Of a DNA stretch of 64,000 bases, positions 11,645-60,159 are shown piece after piece. The notes beneath the pieces were generated by a model. That model had not been told where the DNA came from and searched no databases. It saw only the letters and a program-made list of their open reading frames with translations. This stretch comes from Dicyema japonicum (Eukaryota > Animalia > Dicyemida). The position numbers and the translations under genes are program-made. How positions within the stretch are numbered: position 1 is the stretch's first letter; each line of letters opens with the position of its first letter. The stretch is from assembly GCA_011109175.1 (NCBI GenBank), contig RDEW01000030.1:665937-729936 (forward strand), read 5' to 3'.

Positions 11645-11880
11645 TTATTAAATTAAAATTATTCCAAAGACCAAGGGTAACCAAACTAACTAACTCCTTG
11701 ATCCTGACTCGTTCCAGCATTCCAGAACTTGTCTCCAGGTAACGAAATTTTCACCCAGGGAAGAATAATCGGATCCTCTTGATGCCGATTGGACGTTTCC
11801 TCAGTAATGGATCCAATGACGCCATCTGAAAATAACTTATGACCAACTAGCCACATTAAACCACATGGAGCCACGCGGCC
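11645..11880 (-). mobile_element. Short non-autonomous retroelement family B (structured core plus Jockey-like LINE tail)
   Basis: Aligns end to end with 55285-55530. Tail ggaacgagtcaggatc..gagttagttag..ggtctttggaataa resembles LINE 3' ends at ~44085-44130 and ~61520-61570. Confidence 0.8.
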
Positions 11881-14349: not shown

Positions 14350-14472
14350 ATTAGAACCAGCGAAAGGGAAGAGAACACCTTGTCTATGTAGTTGTGAATC
14401 CCTCCAATGGAGTGTAGACCAAATGATCTTTTTTTGTACCACCTTTGGATCGCAGTGGATCACATGACGAAA
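14350..14472 (-). mobile_element. Degenerate partial copy of short element family A
   Basis: gtagttgtgaatccctccaatggagtg..aaatgatc..gtggatcacatgacg aligns with ~24995-25115. Confidence 0.65.
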
Positions 14473-14519
14473 CTTCCTCACATGTGCTAGTTCCACAAGT
14501 TGGTTTGAAGCAGAGATGA

Positions 14520-15300
14520 AATCTTATTAATCCCATGTTTGTGGTCACCCACCATACTTTCAAGTTTTTTTCACGGCTGATTGAATGTAAATCCTCATTG
14601 CTTCTTTGGTGGATAGTCTACAATTCTTGAAACATTTTGAGACACTCCATCCAGTCACCAGCGGAATAACCTTAACTTGATAGTGTAGAGAAGAGATAGC
14701 AGGAAGGTACTTGTAACAATTTAACCGGAGAACACTAAACGTCTCCTTAATCAAGGAATACCTTACGGAACGCCACCGAGACTTCCTCAAGATGTCAAAG
14801 TCTCTTGAACATCCTTTCGGGTCGGAAATCAAACTACGCCTGTCCGAGATACGAGAAGAAACCTTCCCCTTTGTGGAGATTAATCCAGGAAGCCAAAACT
14901 AGCCGCAGGAGAAAACCTAGTATGGACTCCGGGATCACTTAATTAGACGATAACTCTTGTCCTCTTTCTTTGGTTCCGGAGTTAATAAAATAAATTGATT
15001 CCGTACATTCTCCGTACACATATAGAATGCTTATTGCTAATTTATTCTTTTCGAACTTCACTTGTTGTACAACACATAAATCAAATTTTGTGTTTTATTG
15101 GGGACATAACTATCATAGAGGTGGGTATTACTCACCTAGAGTGTTTGCGGACAATGGAGGTGGAGAAGAAGCGTAAGTAGGCTTTTCTCGCAAATAGATT
15201 GTTATTCCCCTTACACGTGATGATATAATTACTAAGTTCCACAGAGGGTAATCGGGAGTAAATAGAAATAGTCACCCCATTATGCAATCAATTGGACTCA
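14520..15300. mobile_element. Two R4/Dong-like RLE 3' scraps (minus 14520-14720, plus 15100-15300) around a Jockey-like tail
   Basis: QVKVIPLVTGWSVSKCFK..YIQSAVKKT and IIEVGITHLECLRTMEVEKKRK are homologous to the 4610-6230 element. Confidence 0.65.
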
Positions 15301-24878: not shown

Positions 24879-25192
24879 TATTATTATTATTATAACCCCG
24901 GATACACCGAGAAAGAAGTTAAAGTAACCAACTAATTAAGTGCATCCAGTTTCCACTTCTACAGAAACAGAGTCCATCCGGAATCAGCATAAAGGGTAAG
25001 ACGTCCATTACATGCAGTTGTGGAAACCCCTCCAGTGGAGTGGGGAAGAGCAAATGATCCTTTTTCATGCCGGCCTGGCACTGGGCGTCACCTAGACAGG
25101 TGGATCACATGACGCCACTATATTAGGAAGAGAGAGGAGGAACAGACAAGCAAGCAAAAAATTTAAACCAATTAACCACGCAGCACCACATC
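24879..25192 (-). mobile_element. Short non-autonomous retroelement family A (structured core, terminal stem-loop, (TAA)n tail)
   Basis: 12-bp TSD ttggccctcgat at 24867-24878 and 25193-25204. Highly similar to 50711-51036 in the opposite orientation. Confidence 0.9.
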
Positions 25193-39942: not shown

Positions 39943-40619
39943 CATCAGTGTGTCAAAGGTTACTCCATGAATCTTGACTGAGTTTTGTGTGGGATTTTTT
40001 TCTATTCAAAAACAAATTGGTATATAATTTTCCATTCTTCTATTTGATGTAATTAGAGAAGTCGAGGATTTCTCCGTCGACGTAGAAATTGAAGTAGATT
40101 CTAGCCACACGTTACGTCGATAGAGCATATATTTAAATCGTTGGTAGCTGTCGAAATACATTTGTTTTTGCTCGTGAATACACCGAGAAAGAAGTTAGCA
40201 GTAAAATACTAAATAAAAATTATTTTAAAGCCTAAAGCGTTCCACCGATTCCAGAACTCATCGCCAGGTAACGAAATTGTCTCCCAGTGGAAAAGATATT
40301 TTGAGCATATAATTTTGTTATATTATCAAGTTCCTTTGGTTTCTTTCAAATTTGTTACCCTTCTCACGAATTTTGACTTCGAAAGAGTGTTCCATATCTA
40401 TTTTTGATTTAGTCGTCAAGAATCGGATTATGTCTTAATCTCTTGTGTTAGTTTTTGGAGGTTTTTTAAATGATTAAGTTTTTTAATTCACAACCAATAT
40501 TTTTATTTATTTATTAACCACAGGCTTATAACATTGATAACCATTACAGGATTCCGCTTACAAGATATATCCTCCAATAGTCCATTACAGGATTCCGCTT
40601 CCAAAGAGAGGTGGAGAAG

Positions 40620-43599: not shown

Positions 43600-44135
43600 C
43601 TGCACATCACTTCGTTTGATTGTATGACGCATTTGTCAAGCCGATCCTCGATACAATTTATCATCTAAAAAACGTCAAAAACCGAACAACTTGGACTAGA
43701 TTCTTTCCAACGAGAAAACTTATATCCTTACTAGGACTGAACTGGTCAATAAGAATAAACAAGGAATCACTATATAAGAAATGCTACACTTCCAGAGACA
43801 CTTGATGTAGATTTAAAACTTGTGAACAAAAGTCTAAGAAGTGATGACGATCTAGACGAGTTGAGGAAACTCTCTTACGACCGAGGAGGTTGGAAGAGGT
43901 TGGTTCGGAGGATTGTTTTGAATGTTGCACGAGTGAAATTATAACTATTATGGTTTTAAGCATGTTGCCTATAATAATAAGAAGACCCGAGGAACGTGCC
44001 GTTACGACTACGGGAAACCAGTTATATGGTTGATGCTTACTTGAGTGGGCTCGAGGGAGGAACATCGTGTCCTCTTTTGGAACGTGTCAGGATCACGCGA
44101 TTAGTTAGTTTTGCCTTACCGTGGACTTTGGAATT
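43600..44135 (+). mobile_element. Adjacent RTE-like (43600-43900) and Jockey-like (43960-44135) LINE 3' fragments
   Basis: YDAFVKPIL..SLLGLNWSIRINKESLYKKC..DDLDELRKL, then ggaacgtgtcaggatcacgcgattagttag. Confidence 0.65.
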
Positions 44136-44429
44136 TTTTTTATTTCATTTTTCATTTCAAAAAAGTTAAATAGATTGTTGTAAAATATCCTGAGATATTT
44201 TCGAATTGGGCACACTTGGGTGATTTTTGTCAATAAAATGAAAAATTCATATGTTCTTTAAAATTGCTTAAAACTTATAAAAAATGTTATTTTAATCAAA
44301 AATATTATAAACCTAAAGTTATAAAGTCAAAAAATCAAAATTTTGAGTAATGTAAAAAAAGGTCAAAATTTAATTTTTTAGGTCAATAAATTTTTTTATA
44401 TAAATAATCAGTTAATTTATCCCCAGTAA

Positions 44430-50710: not shown

Positions 50711-51036
50711 AAGCCGCATGGCGCCATTTGGTGCTTCGTGGCTAATTGGTTGAAGTTCTGTTTGATTGTCTGTTTCTCCTCTCTCTTCCTATTAGAATGC
50801 CGTCATGTGATCCACCTGTCTAGGTGACGCCCAGTGACAGGCCGGCACGAAAAAGGATCATTTGCTCTCCCCCACTCCACTGGAGGGGTTTCCACAACTG
50901 CATGTAATGGACGTCTTACCTTTTATGCTGATTCCGGATGGACTCTTTCTGTAGAAGTGGAAACTGGATACACTTAATTAATTGTTTACTTTAACTTCTT
51001 TCTCGGTGTATCCGGGGTTAATAAATAATAAAATAA
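50711..51036 (+). mobile_element. Short non-autonomous retroelement family A, full length
   Basis: Imperfect TSD ggaagattt(g)aat at 50698-50710 and 51037-51048; A/T-rich tail; matches 24879-25192. Confidence 0.9.
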
Positions 51037-55151: not shown

Positions 55152-55284
55152 TTACACACATGGAAGGAAACGTGCAAATACATAATTTAAATTTTATTTT
55201 TTTCTATATTAATTTAATAAAAAATTAATTAAAAATATAAATTTAATTTCACTCTTGCAAATAATGTTGCGAATTATCTCGTGG

Positions 55285-55530
55285 CCCCATATGGTGCTAC
55301 GTGGATAGTTGTCATTGGTGCTACGTGGGTAGTTGTATTTTCCTTCCTTCCAATGCGTCACTGAATCCACTTTACTGAGGAGGCGCCCAATGCCTGGCCG
55401 TCATCAAGAGGATCCAACAATTCTTCCCCGTCGTTATCTGGTGACAAGTTCTGGAATGGTGGAACGAGTCAGGATCGAGGAGTTAGTTAGTCTGGTTACC
55501 CTTGGTCTTTGGAAATAATTTTAATTTAAT
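55285..55530 (+). mobile_element. Short non-autonomous retroelement family B
   Basis: Aligns with the reverse complement of 11645-11880; internal 23-bp tandem duplication in the head. Confidence 0.8.
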
Positions 55531-57900: not shown

Positions 57901-59760
57901 TTTTTATTCACAAAGTTATTGGAGAAATCAAGATGAAGAGAGGGATACTGCAGGGTGACTCTGTCATCGCAGATCTTGTGCTGTAATGAACTTTCTAAGC
58001 GAAATATCCCAAAAAAAACTATAAATAAAACAACATCCTTGAATACTGTAATTACATATCTGAATAAGGAAATTACCAATAAAATCAGAAATAAAAACAA
58101 AAAAATGGGAGGCTGCTTTGATGTCTGTAAACAGACACACAAAGACATCATCCTTATGGAGAACACTACGGAAACTCAAAAAGATTCCCATACAACATAC
58201 ACCAGGAATTAATCCTGACACGATTATGAAATTTTATGTCAGTTTAAGCCACAAACCATATTTGAAACTGGATGATCAACCGAAACACAAGAAGAAAAAA
58301 TATCCATACATCGAATATTTCAAACCACTGGATGTATTTTATGCAATTAAATACATGAAAAATACAAAATCCAAAGGGGCGGATGACATTTCAATAACTT
58401 AATTGAAACACTTGGGGCCAATAGCAATCGATGCCCTTACTAAGATTTTCAATTTCTCAGTGAATAGAGATGAGATTCCTCATTATTGAAAAAATCACTT
58501 ATACATCCATTAACTAAAAAGAACAAAGCTTTAGACAACCCCCGGAGTTATCGTCCAATATCAATTCTTTGTGGCTTTTCAAGAACATTGTAAAATTAAT
58601 CCTCCACAAGATTACTCATCGCTTATCTGCAATCCAAAATTAATCCTCCACAAGATTACTCAACTTAAACAGATCTAACAAAACTAACTCAGTTCATCTC
58701 GGATGAACTGAACTACTCAAAACCGCATAAAAGAACGGTACTTGTCGCTCTGGATATCGAGAAGGCGTTTGATTCGGTACCGAGGAAAACTCTAACAACA
58801 AAAATTTTTGACACTGTTATCCATCCGAAATCCAGATGTGGCTGCCAATTTCATTAATGGTAGAGGCCAAGTTGTCATGAATAATAGAAAATCAAGACAA
58901 CGATACCTCCCCAACGGGGTCCCTCAAGGATCCCCTTTATCACCAACCTTGTTCAATTTATTAACAAGAGACTTTCTAAATCCAAAATACCATCCTTCTG
59001 TCTTATGCCAACAATCTCATTGTCGCAGCAAGACACCAAGACCATAAAGAAGCTGCGCGAAGGGTTCAGGAGACCCTCGACATATGAACCCATGGTTCCT
59101 CAAAAACCACATGAAAATATCTCCTGGAAGTCGAGCACTGCGATTATCTCCTCCTACAGGAAACATACATCTTTCGATCTTAAATTAACTTGGAATGGAG
59201 AGCTTATCCCAGTTAATAAGAACTCATCAATCTTTGGAGTTACATATGACCCGTTGATGACGTTCACACATCATGTGGACACAATAATATCAAGAGTTCA
59301 AAAAAAGATGGAAATCCTCAAGACCTTTGCTAGATCTACAATATCTTCACTTTCTTATCTTAAATTATTATACAAACAGTATATTCTACCGACAATGGAA
59401 CATGCATGTACGGCGTACACCCTTGTCAACATCCACGCAGAACAAATTAGAGGTCATACAAAACCAATGCCTCCGGATCCTTCTTAAATGTGACAGAATG
59501 ACGCCTACGTCAGAAATGAAGAACACATTAGATCTCAAAAAAGTTATGGAACATCTCGGTGACGAACAACAAAAATTTTTGAAAATGATGCGATCTTCTG
59601 GTAGCCCCTTGAAAATGAGTTTTTTGCCTACCAGAAGTATGCTCGAAAATTTGAGATCAAACCCTTCTTTTTTTGGACGATCATAAAAGATTGCAGACAA
59701 AGTCGAAACAAAGAAGGACGCACTGACACCGGGATAACTTAATTAGATGATAACTTTTTC
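57900..59760 (+). mobile_element. Jockey/I-like LINE, RT domain to 3' end
   Basis: KSKGADDI; SYRPISIL; LVALDIEKAFDSV; NGVPQGSPLSPTLFN; IFGVTYD; 3' acaccgggataacttaattagatgataac. Confidence 0.88.
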
Positions 59761-60159
59761 CTCTTTCCTGTGTTTCCGGAATTATAATAATAATGAAAAA
59801 AGACATCAGACAGAATGCCAAAAAAGTATAGAGACCACTCAACTTTTTTTAGTAAAGATAACTAAGAAAAATTGATATCTTTTTGATTAAAGTATTATTA
59901 AATGCCGATATTCGACCTCAGAAATTAAGGAAAAGTTATATAAAAAGATATTTGTCAAATTAAATTATGTGTCCTTTCAACTACAGCACTCCGAAAAAAT
60001 ATACATAAACTTTATGATCTTCTAAAATGTCCGCTACTTCAATTGAAATGGAACAATCTTTCTCTAATTTAAAAAAAACATGTCAAAAATAGAAATTTCA
60101 ATAAACACTATATTGAAAAATATTTCATGCTAAATCATTATTTCTTTAACCTTGCGCCT

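Follow-up and report, generated by a model that had tools for sequence, protein, structure and literature searches.

The stretch of DNA analysed here, referred to as the window, comprises 64,000 nt of contig RDEW01000030.1 of Dicyema japonicum (positions 665,937-729,936), and positions given below without a locus name are those of the window. It contains four copies of short retroelements built around a 62-nt core, whose helices are designated P1 to P4. The copies belong to two SINE families, A and B. The original prediction had placed four cores of two retroelement families here, and its coordinates were found to be correct or at most 2 nt off (11771 for 11769 and 55415 for 55417).

Family A is represented by two of the copies. 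The first, at 24890..25191 on the minus strand, belongs to the young T-type subfamily and was aligned by blastn to the A consensus with 98.4% identity over 303 bp. It is 5'-truncated at consensus position 14 and is flanked by the direct repeat ATCGAGGGCCAA. Its core (25055..25116, minus strand), which is exactly the family-A consensus core, scores 80.3 bits with the covariance model (CM). The second, at 50713..51027 on the plus strand, is a full-length copy of the older C-type with 93.4% identity to the A consensus over 319 bp and the TSD AGGAAGATTT(G)AAT; its core (50799-50860, plus strand) contains two helix mismatches and scores 74.6 bits. The family B copy at 11648..11880 (minus strand, 86.4% identity to the B consensus) has a 9-nt deletion that takes out the 5' strand of P4 from its core (11771-11823, minus strand, 39.7 bits). 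The fourth copy, at 55270..55529 on the plus strand, is of subfamily B2, with AGGCGCC in P1' and a duplicated head segment, and its worn core (55354-55415, plus strand) scores 73.5 bits. The B2 head carries an internal duplication of about 22 bp, in which GGTGCTACGTGG.TAGTTG occurs twice, both at 55280-55335 on the plus strand and at L074:1427-1480.

A divergent relative of the core was identified at 14424..14471 on the minus strand (17.1 bits, E 0.029), with an nhmmer E-value of 2.2e-14 over 14360-14475. It contains the 5' strand of P1, P2 (TGATC/GATCA), a P3-like hairpin and an A-rich J4/2, lacks P1' and P4, and is followed by an A-like body. An 18-nt motif from the 5' part of the core was found seven times in the window with at most three mismatches, compared to 0.41 occurrences expected, and none of 100 shuffles reached seven. 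A separate repeat family of about 270 bp, unrelated to the SINEs with the core, is present at 14726-14995 on the minus strand (475 first-look candidates, 79-83% identity). The sole tRNA in the window is a tRNA-Leu(AAG) gene at 1775-1850 on the plus strand.

The genome analysed comprises 67,542,437 bases in 377 contigs; the published D. japonicum assembly was reported as 67.5 Mb in 377 scaffolds with 49% repeats, and no description of SINEs was found in that genome paper (PMC6736024). No paper on dicyemid ribozymes or SINEs was found in the literature. The data presented here give a first account of the SINEs and LINEs present in a dicyemid genome. Family A, of about 315 bp, is young, with 1748 first-look candidates in the 67.5-Mb genome, and the 40 copies scored for the query all aligned with 96-100% identity. 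Family B, of about 249 bp, is older, with 880 first-look candidates in the same 67.5 Mb; its 40 scored copies also all aligned, and B copies are 80-86% identical. Consensus sequences, confined to these two families and serving to set the limits of the elements, were made from about 30 copies of each family aligned with their flanks. With the covariance model, more than 100 copies of the core were detected in 348 kb of fetched sequence and at least 150 matches genome-wide. TSDs are present in both families; they were seen, as predicted for family A, at both A copies of the window and also at other loci.

Comparison of the two consensus sequences revealed islands of identity. The head (33/38, 87%) and the core (51/62, 82%) are well conserved between A and B, while the linker between them (22/51, 43%) and the 60 nt after the core (34/60, 57%) are not. 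The description of the elements as modular and tail-swapping is therefore right, and together with the covarying helices described below, these islands bear out a structured, conserved central domain in a group of modular SINEs whose LINE tails have been swapped. The core starts 88 nt from the 5' end of the element in A and 65 nt in B, within the 60-90 nt given by the original prediction.

The tails of A and B differ, as had been noted. Family A ends in (AATA/ATA)n, and its tail (consensus 258-307) is 80% identical to 59732-59779 on the plus strand. This site is part of a degraded LINE 3' part at 58808..59790 (plus strand), whose last 50 nt or so resemble the family-A tail, and it lies downstream of an RVT_1 hit within 58808-59047. 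Family B consensus 181-247 matches 44078..44145 on the plus strand at 81%, the 3' end of another LINE-like fragment. The match of the B tail to a LINE 3' end was thus found as predicted, but such a match is not confined to family B, since the A tail has its own counterpart. At 40178..40293 on the minus strand, blastn to the consensus sequences identified a tail-swapped relative with B-body-like and A-tail-like pieces. The elements are short and non-coding, carry TSDs and have a 3' end in common with a LINE (about the last 50 nt in A and the last 65 nt in B), and are thus SINEs. Copies also occur head-to-tail or nested, with two B copies 175 bp apart (L073:1326-1740 and L090) and an A copy broken by a B copy (L063:1230-1700), which shows that SINE insertion is very dense.

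The head common to A and B contains an A-box-like TGGCGCCATGTGG and, as originally described, no B box. Its first 11 nt presumably resemble tRNA-Arg. In four sister copies (L018:2480-2590, L074:2895-3005, L058:950-1062 and L060:2050-2159), a GGTTTGATTCC-like B box was identified 45-60 nt before the core. A search of sister-family heads with ARAGORN and with the Rfam tRNA models was negative for both. The designation of the group as non-tRNA is doubtful in view of the B-box-like motif in the sister copies, although it agrees with the lack of a tRNA model match in any head searched. The SINE group probably began with a tRNA-type head which was largely lost in A and B.

The core is a nested double pseudoknot

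Comparison between families shows that the core folds as RNA into a real nested double pseudoknot, whose helices follow one another as in HDV-like ribozymes. The 62 nt are arranged in the order P1-P2-P3-P3'-P1'-P4-P4'-P2', and the predicted succession P1-P2-P3-P1'-P4-P2' was recovered both in the consensus sequences and by a strict parser. Family A has the helices P1 GGCGUCA/UGACGCC, P2 UGAUCC/GGAUCA, P3 CCU/AGG and P4 GUGCC/GGCAY. L3, correctly described before as short, has 4-5 nt in the consensus sequences (GUCU in A and UACUG in B), and J1/4 is CA, also as given there. For the core at 25055..25116 (minus strand), P1 corresponds to 25116-25110/25090-25084, P2 to 25107-25102/25060-25055, P3 to 25100-25098/25093-25091 and P4 to 25081-25077/25071-25067. 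Its J4/2 (25066-25061) is GAAAAA, preceded by a U which is a C in older copies.

The strict parser used a fixed topology and allowed zero mismatches in any helix, and each sequence was compared to 200 dinucleotide shuffles. A parse was obtained in nine representatives, designated A1, A2, B, B2, L018, D1, D2, LINE-X and Y, of which the last two are the LINE and the LINE derivative described in the next section. Except for L018, their scores range from 15.5 to 22.5, with shuffle means of 0.0-0.9 and none of 200 shuffles reaching the score. L018 scores 17.0 compared to a shuffle mean of 2.1, and one of 200 shuffles reached its score. The sequence of the core at 25055..25116, present also at L003:1576-1637, was parsed with a score of 20.5, which 0/200 shuffles attained. 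A fold by chance is ruled out by these shuffles (0-1/200) and by the excess of the 18-nt motif in the window (0/100).

The covariance model was built on the nested part of the fold. No unusual stability of this part was identified by MFE (z = -1.5, +0.3 and -1.9), and the support for the fold is comparative, not thermodynamic. A loose descriptor scan of the 348 kb was rejected as uninformative, giving 610 matches outside the family in AT-rich DNA, and the strict parser with shuffles was used in its place.

Base pairs were compared at the family level in an alignment made by hand from the parser output, because MAFFT misaligned LINE-X against the SINE cores and an alignment fitted to the covariance model lost the register of P2'. 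All copies are from one genome and most copy-to-copy differences are neutral decay, so that only differences between families count. P2 is TGATCC/GGATCA in family A, GGATCC/GGATCC in B, TGGTTC/GAACCA in D (95 exact matches in the genome compared to 0 for the reversed control), GTGGTTT/GAACCAC in LINE-X and TGTGG/CCACA in element Y. Aligned from the P3 side, four of six P2 pairs are changed on both sides and none is broken; the outer pair is U-A in A and G-C in B. P4 differs in sequence in nearly every family, with the hairpin strands GTGCC/GGCAY, ATGCC/GGCAT, GTGTT/AACAC, ATGTC/GATAT, GATATAGT/ACTATATC, GATATAAT/ATTATATC, GTGTA/TACAC and GTGCA/TGCAT; it has 9 bp in LINE-X and is absent in Y. 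At its base, A has a G·U or G-C pair and B an A-U pair. The third P3 pair, U-A in A and B, is A-U in two D copies (L062 and L082), and P1 has been rebuilt in LINE-X (AATGACG/TGTCATT) and in Y. The compensatory changes noted originally, at the outer P2 pair and the base of P4, were thus recovered in the consensus sequences, and covariation extends to P2, P4, P1 and P3. All wobble pairs are G·U on the sense strand only, and the folded structure is therefore that of the RNA of the element.

The module at the 5' ends of LINEs

A fold of the same topology was identified at the 5' end of a young LINE designated LINE-X (L029, minus strand). Here, the module is in frame with the 2A-type peptide motif DIELNPGP, which is followed by an APE endonuclease domain (PF14529, E 1.5e-14). 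The frame is open from base 1 of P1, where the A of an ATG stands, and another ATG of this frame is located in J4/2. From the first ATG on, the fold codes for protein, and it encloses the start codons. A query extended by 159 nt of upstream flank was used to collect genome copies of LINE-X (97-100% identity); of 29 copies, 17 start at most 2 nt from the start of P1, 13 of them on the same base, and seven further alignments extend up to 22 nt into the A/T-rich flank. With an ORF that begins on the very first nucleotide, the RNA of LINE-X, as read from the sequence, would have no leader. More generally, LINE ORFs of this genome start with a leader of about 40-60 amino acids that ends in a 2A-type motif (DIELNPGP, DVEANPGP or DVEPNPGP), with the APE domain directly after it; such leaders are present at L029:1-1204 (minus strand), L005:2113-2291 (plus strand) and L046:1749-1990 (plus strand).

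Element Y (L005:2113-2291, plus strand, and L006) is a non-autonomous LINE derivative of 175 bp with about 800 first-look candidates of 93-99% identity. It consists of the module without P4, the ORF start, the 2A motif, the first APE residues and an A-rich end, and its copies start in the A-run that forms P1. In a third LINE, L046, the part with P2, P4 and J4/2 (CGAACA) is present. Closer to A and B are LINE 5' regions returned by a pattern search, which contain AAGGATCATTTGCTC or AAGGATCC and, 80-110 nt further on (the gap set in the pattern), an NPGP motif. AAGGATCATTTGCTC corresponds to P2' of SINE A plus the next 7 nt, an identity of 15 nt with another LINE family.

Neither the SINE-only nhmmer profile nor the covariance model gave a match to the modules of LINE-X and Y, and a link between SINE and LINE by sequence profile was rejected, since the profile falls short of these modules. 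The link of the SINE core to the LINE module is suggested by topology, short motifs and the 15-nt identity; with no significant alignment, it is not statistically established. The core domain is not an invention of the SINEs, as a fold of the same topology, overlapping the start codon, is found at the 5' end of the LINEs of this genome. Its position at the first nucleotides of a LINE and of a LINE-derived element leads to a picture of the SINE as a degenerate head, a LINE 5' module and a LINE 3' tail.

In the young A subfamily (window 25061-25069, minus strand, and the A consensus), a C-to-T change creates an ATG in J4/2 and opens a frame of 49 codons (MKKDH...). Judged by its start, which is like that of a LINE leader (MKKNH...), this frame is probably a relic of LINE coding sequence.

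Self-cleavage and the role of the core

It appears fairly probable that the core is a LINE-derived module with an HDV-type fold which serves in the SINEs as a non-cleaving structural signal imitating the 5' end of a LINE RNA. The 62-nt core would then belong to the 5'-terminal module of those LINEs of this genome which encode a 2A peptide at the N-terminus together with an APE domain, and in which the fold would begin at nucleotide 1 of the element and overlap the ORF start. Families A and B and several sisters would be composites, in which a degenerate pol-III-type head is joined to the LINE 5' module and to the terminal 50-65 nt of a LINE 3' end. Such a SINE would present both ends of the LINE RNA. 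The module would be no self-cleaver in the SINEs; the LINE protein may bind to it, just as the R2 protein binds the R2 5' pseudoknot, or alternatively it may recruit the translation machinery, as proposed for the ribozyme folds of R2 and L1Tc. By this analogy, recognition would be the most likely role of the module.

A different role, which we consider unlikely, is that of a working, perhaps slow, HDV-like ribozyme in the SINE RNA, which would cut the head off most transcripts and leave an uncut minority to be copied. The topology fits: P1 has 6-7 bp, P3 has 3 bp and abuts P1', and P4 is variable and dispensable. J4/2 opens with a C, with purines after it, in B (CAAGA), in D-b and D-c (CAAAAA), in LINE-X (CAUGAAAAA) and in L046 (CGAACA), among others. 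The candidate catalytic C after P4 was identified in 32 of the 46 unique B cores scored, the remainder being worn, and it is likewise present in D-b and D-c and in several others. The version closest to the canonical form is D-c, in which P1 is closed by a G1·U wobble and a 2-bp P1.1 (UG:CA) is plausible. Since the C has been kept in B, D-b and D-c and is joined in D-c by the G1·U, residual catalysis is conceivable there. A SINE-like element with an internal active hammerhead is, moreover, known from schistosomes (PMC2770079, PMC6765202).

The 5' ends of the SINEs speak against cleavage, as they are not piled up at G1. All of 28 copies picked by core score alone retain linker or head upstream of G1, and their truncations are scattered. 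Of 50 genome-wide B cores with an exact 5' half, 48 follow a TTCC-rich linker and one carries an internal deletion; no more than one could start near G1. The sequence upstream of G1 has been kept, and the reverse-transcribed SINE RNAs were therefore uncut. Even D-c has a conserved leader of 7-11 nt before G1, with heterogeneous DNA beyond it. An element 5' end at nucleotide 1 of P1, absent from the A and B SINEs (0/28 and at most 1/50), is found in LINE-X and Y, as in R2, RTE and L1Tc elements; a transcription start at this site explains it equally well.

The sequence of the core points in the same direction. Family A has a G where the C of B and D aligns, and the adjacent C or U can pair in P4; the subfamily that is youngest and tightest has exchanged this adjacent C for U. 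Identity to the A consensus, which is dominated by the T-type, averages 97.6% in T-type copies (n=28) and 93.0% in C-type copies (n=8). D-a has a U at the candidate C, and element Y, which lacks P4 and whose segment between P1' and P2' contains no C, is unable to use a C75-type mechanism. P1.1 is not conserved: UG:CA can be formed in A only by opening P3, lies elsewhere in B and is absent in LINE-X (AAGA/UUGGU), which leaves D-c as the only plausible case. The closing pair of P1 is G1-C in A and B instead of G·U, A1-U in LINE-X, G1·U in D-d as in D-c, and G2·U in D-a, and the L3 of A and B has just 4-5 nt.

Searches against Rfam, a check foreseen from the start, returned no HDV-type family. 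At the gathering score, the whole window contained no HDV-type match, and around the core nothing was found up to an E-value of 10 with these models, which are sequence-specific and without pseudoknots. Up to an E-value of 5, nine loci whose cores are divergent gave no match to the HDV, CPEB3 or drz models, and the three weak hits (mir-198, STnc180 and R2_retro_el) are unrelated. Self-cleavage in the SINEs is not supported. The active variant ribozyme considered in the original prediction finds no support in the SINEs in view of the uncut state of the copied RNAs, the U at the candidate C in the youngest subfamily and the absence of several HDV-like core features, among which the missing P1.1 had been recognized correctly for A and B.

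Another explanation, quite improbable in our judgement, is that the core is functionless in the SINEs, as a passive relic of a LINE 5' end captured once, the conserved appearance being due to kinship of the families. A and B are homologous over head and core, the variation among copies is mostly neutral decay and the sample is of one genome, all of which would agree with a relic. However, the core was held at 82% identity while the linker and the post-core region diverged to 43% and 57%, and the changes in P2, P4 and P1 among A, B, D-a, D-b and D-c are compensatory and non-random, which requires selection on the source copies.

It is very improbable that the module acts at the DNA level, as an internal promoter or initiator which sets the transcription start of the LINEs and serves as a second promoter in the SINEs, its RNA fold being incidental: the module does lie at the 5' end of LINE-X and Y and within 7-11 nt of that of D-c, and PMC3383444 describes the Pr77 region of L1Tc as both promoter and ribozyme, but a promoter motif would conserve sequence and not complementarity, whereas here the helix sequences were replaced wholesale between families with pairing kept, including G·U wobbles that exist in the sense-strand RNA only. 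A promoter and an RNA role could exist side by side.

The non-cleaving structural signal derived from the LINE 5' end is thus the explanation we prefer. Compensatory evolution has preserved the fold inside thousands of SINE copies that evidently come from uncut RNA. If confirmed, the fold would have been selected for a job other than cleavage, for example, protein binding or the start of translation, and SINEs would be able to borrow a LINE 5' signal besides the 3' tail. A more far-reaching version, put forward tentatively and with some doubt, is that the HDV-type fold is a non-cleaving recognition module throughout, that the LINE 5' knot, which surrounds the start codon of an ORF without leader, is recognized by the LINE protein, the ribosome or both, and that the SINEs succeed by copying both ends of the LINE RNA. 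Were recognition to be the true role, this would be the first SINE dependent on a LINE 5' signal, and a natural HDV fold would have been kept for a non-catalytic job. The natural variants with or without the C, the G·U, P4 and the leader form a set for parting catalysis from recognition in the HDV fold.

Comparison with known systems

Named superfamilies of SINE central domains are CORE, V, Deu, Ceph, Nin-DC, Inv and Meta. The core described here resembles them in that, in several families, it stands out as a conserved block between a head-linker that varies and LINE tails that are swapped. Compared by description, we know of no covarying pseudoknot or LINE 5' origin reported for the named domains. 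A full-text literature search with strings of 12-16 nt from the core gave unrelated matches only.

HDV-like ribozymes have been established at the 5' ends of LINEs and of their short, internally deleted derivatives, such as R2, RTE/Baggins, L1Tc/NARTc and SIDER (PMC6765202, PMC4035085 and PMC3383444). The module in D. japonicum shares with those of R2, RTE/Baggins and L1Tc, and of the R2 SIDEs, NARTc and SIDER1/2, the nested double pseudoknot with the same helix order, a P1 of 6-7 bp, a short P3 right before P1', a variable P4, and a J4/2 of C and purines in several families. It is likewise located at the first nucleotides of a LINE, LINE-X, and of an internally deleted derivative, element Y. 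In Leishmania SIDER2, a second, internal copy of the signature is present (PMC4035085). In contrast to these systems, the fold of the A and B SINEs lies 65-88 nt inside the element behind a separate head, and the copied RNAs are uncut. A conserved P1.1 is missing, L3 has 4-5 nt, the closing pair is G-C, and the C is lost in A1 and Y. Furthermore, the fold is coding from the ATG on in the LINEs of this genome, no HDV-type family of Rfam matches it, and ribozyme activity here is putative.

For R2, it was shown that the R2 protein binds a 5' pseudoknot which is part of the HDV-like ribozyme, and an IRES-like start on uncapped RNA was proposed (PMC6765202). The module of LINE-X would, by analogy only, take a corresponding role: it is also a 5'-terminal pseudoknot of a LINE RNA and encloses the start codons. 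The LINEs described here differ from R2 in being of the APE type with a 2A peptide.

The schistosome elements Sm-alpha and Sj-alpha offer a further parallel, being abundant pol-III-type short retroposons of a parasitic spiralian with a ribozyme fold downstream of the promoter region. However, their ribozyme is of the hammerhead class and its activity has been shown, and an origin from a LINE 5' end is not described there. Known so far are HDV-like ribozymes as processors of LINE 5' ends; what is new in D. japonicum is a covarying fold of the HDV type that is carried uncut in the middle of abundant SINEs.
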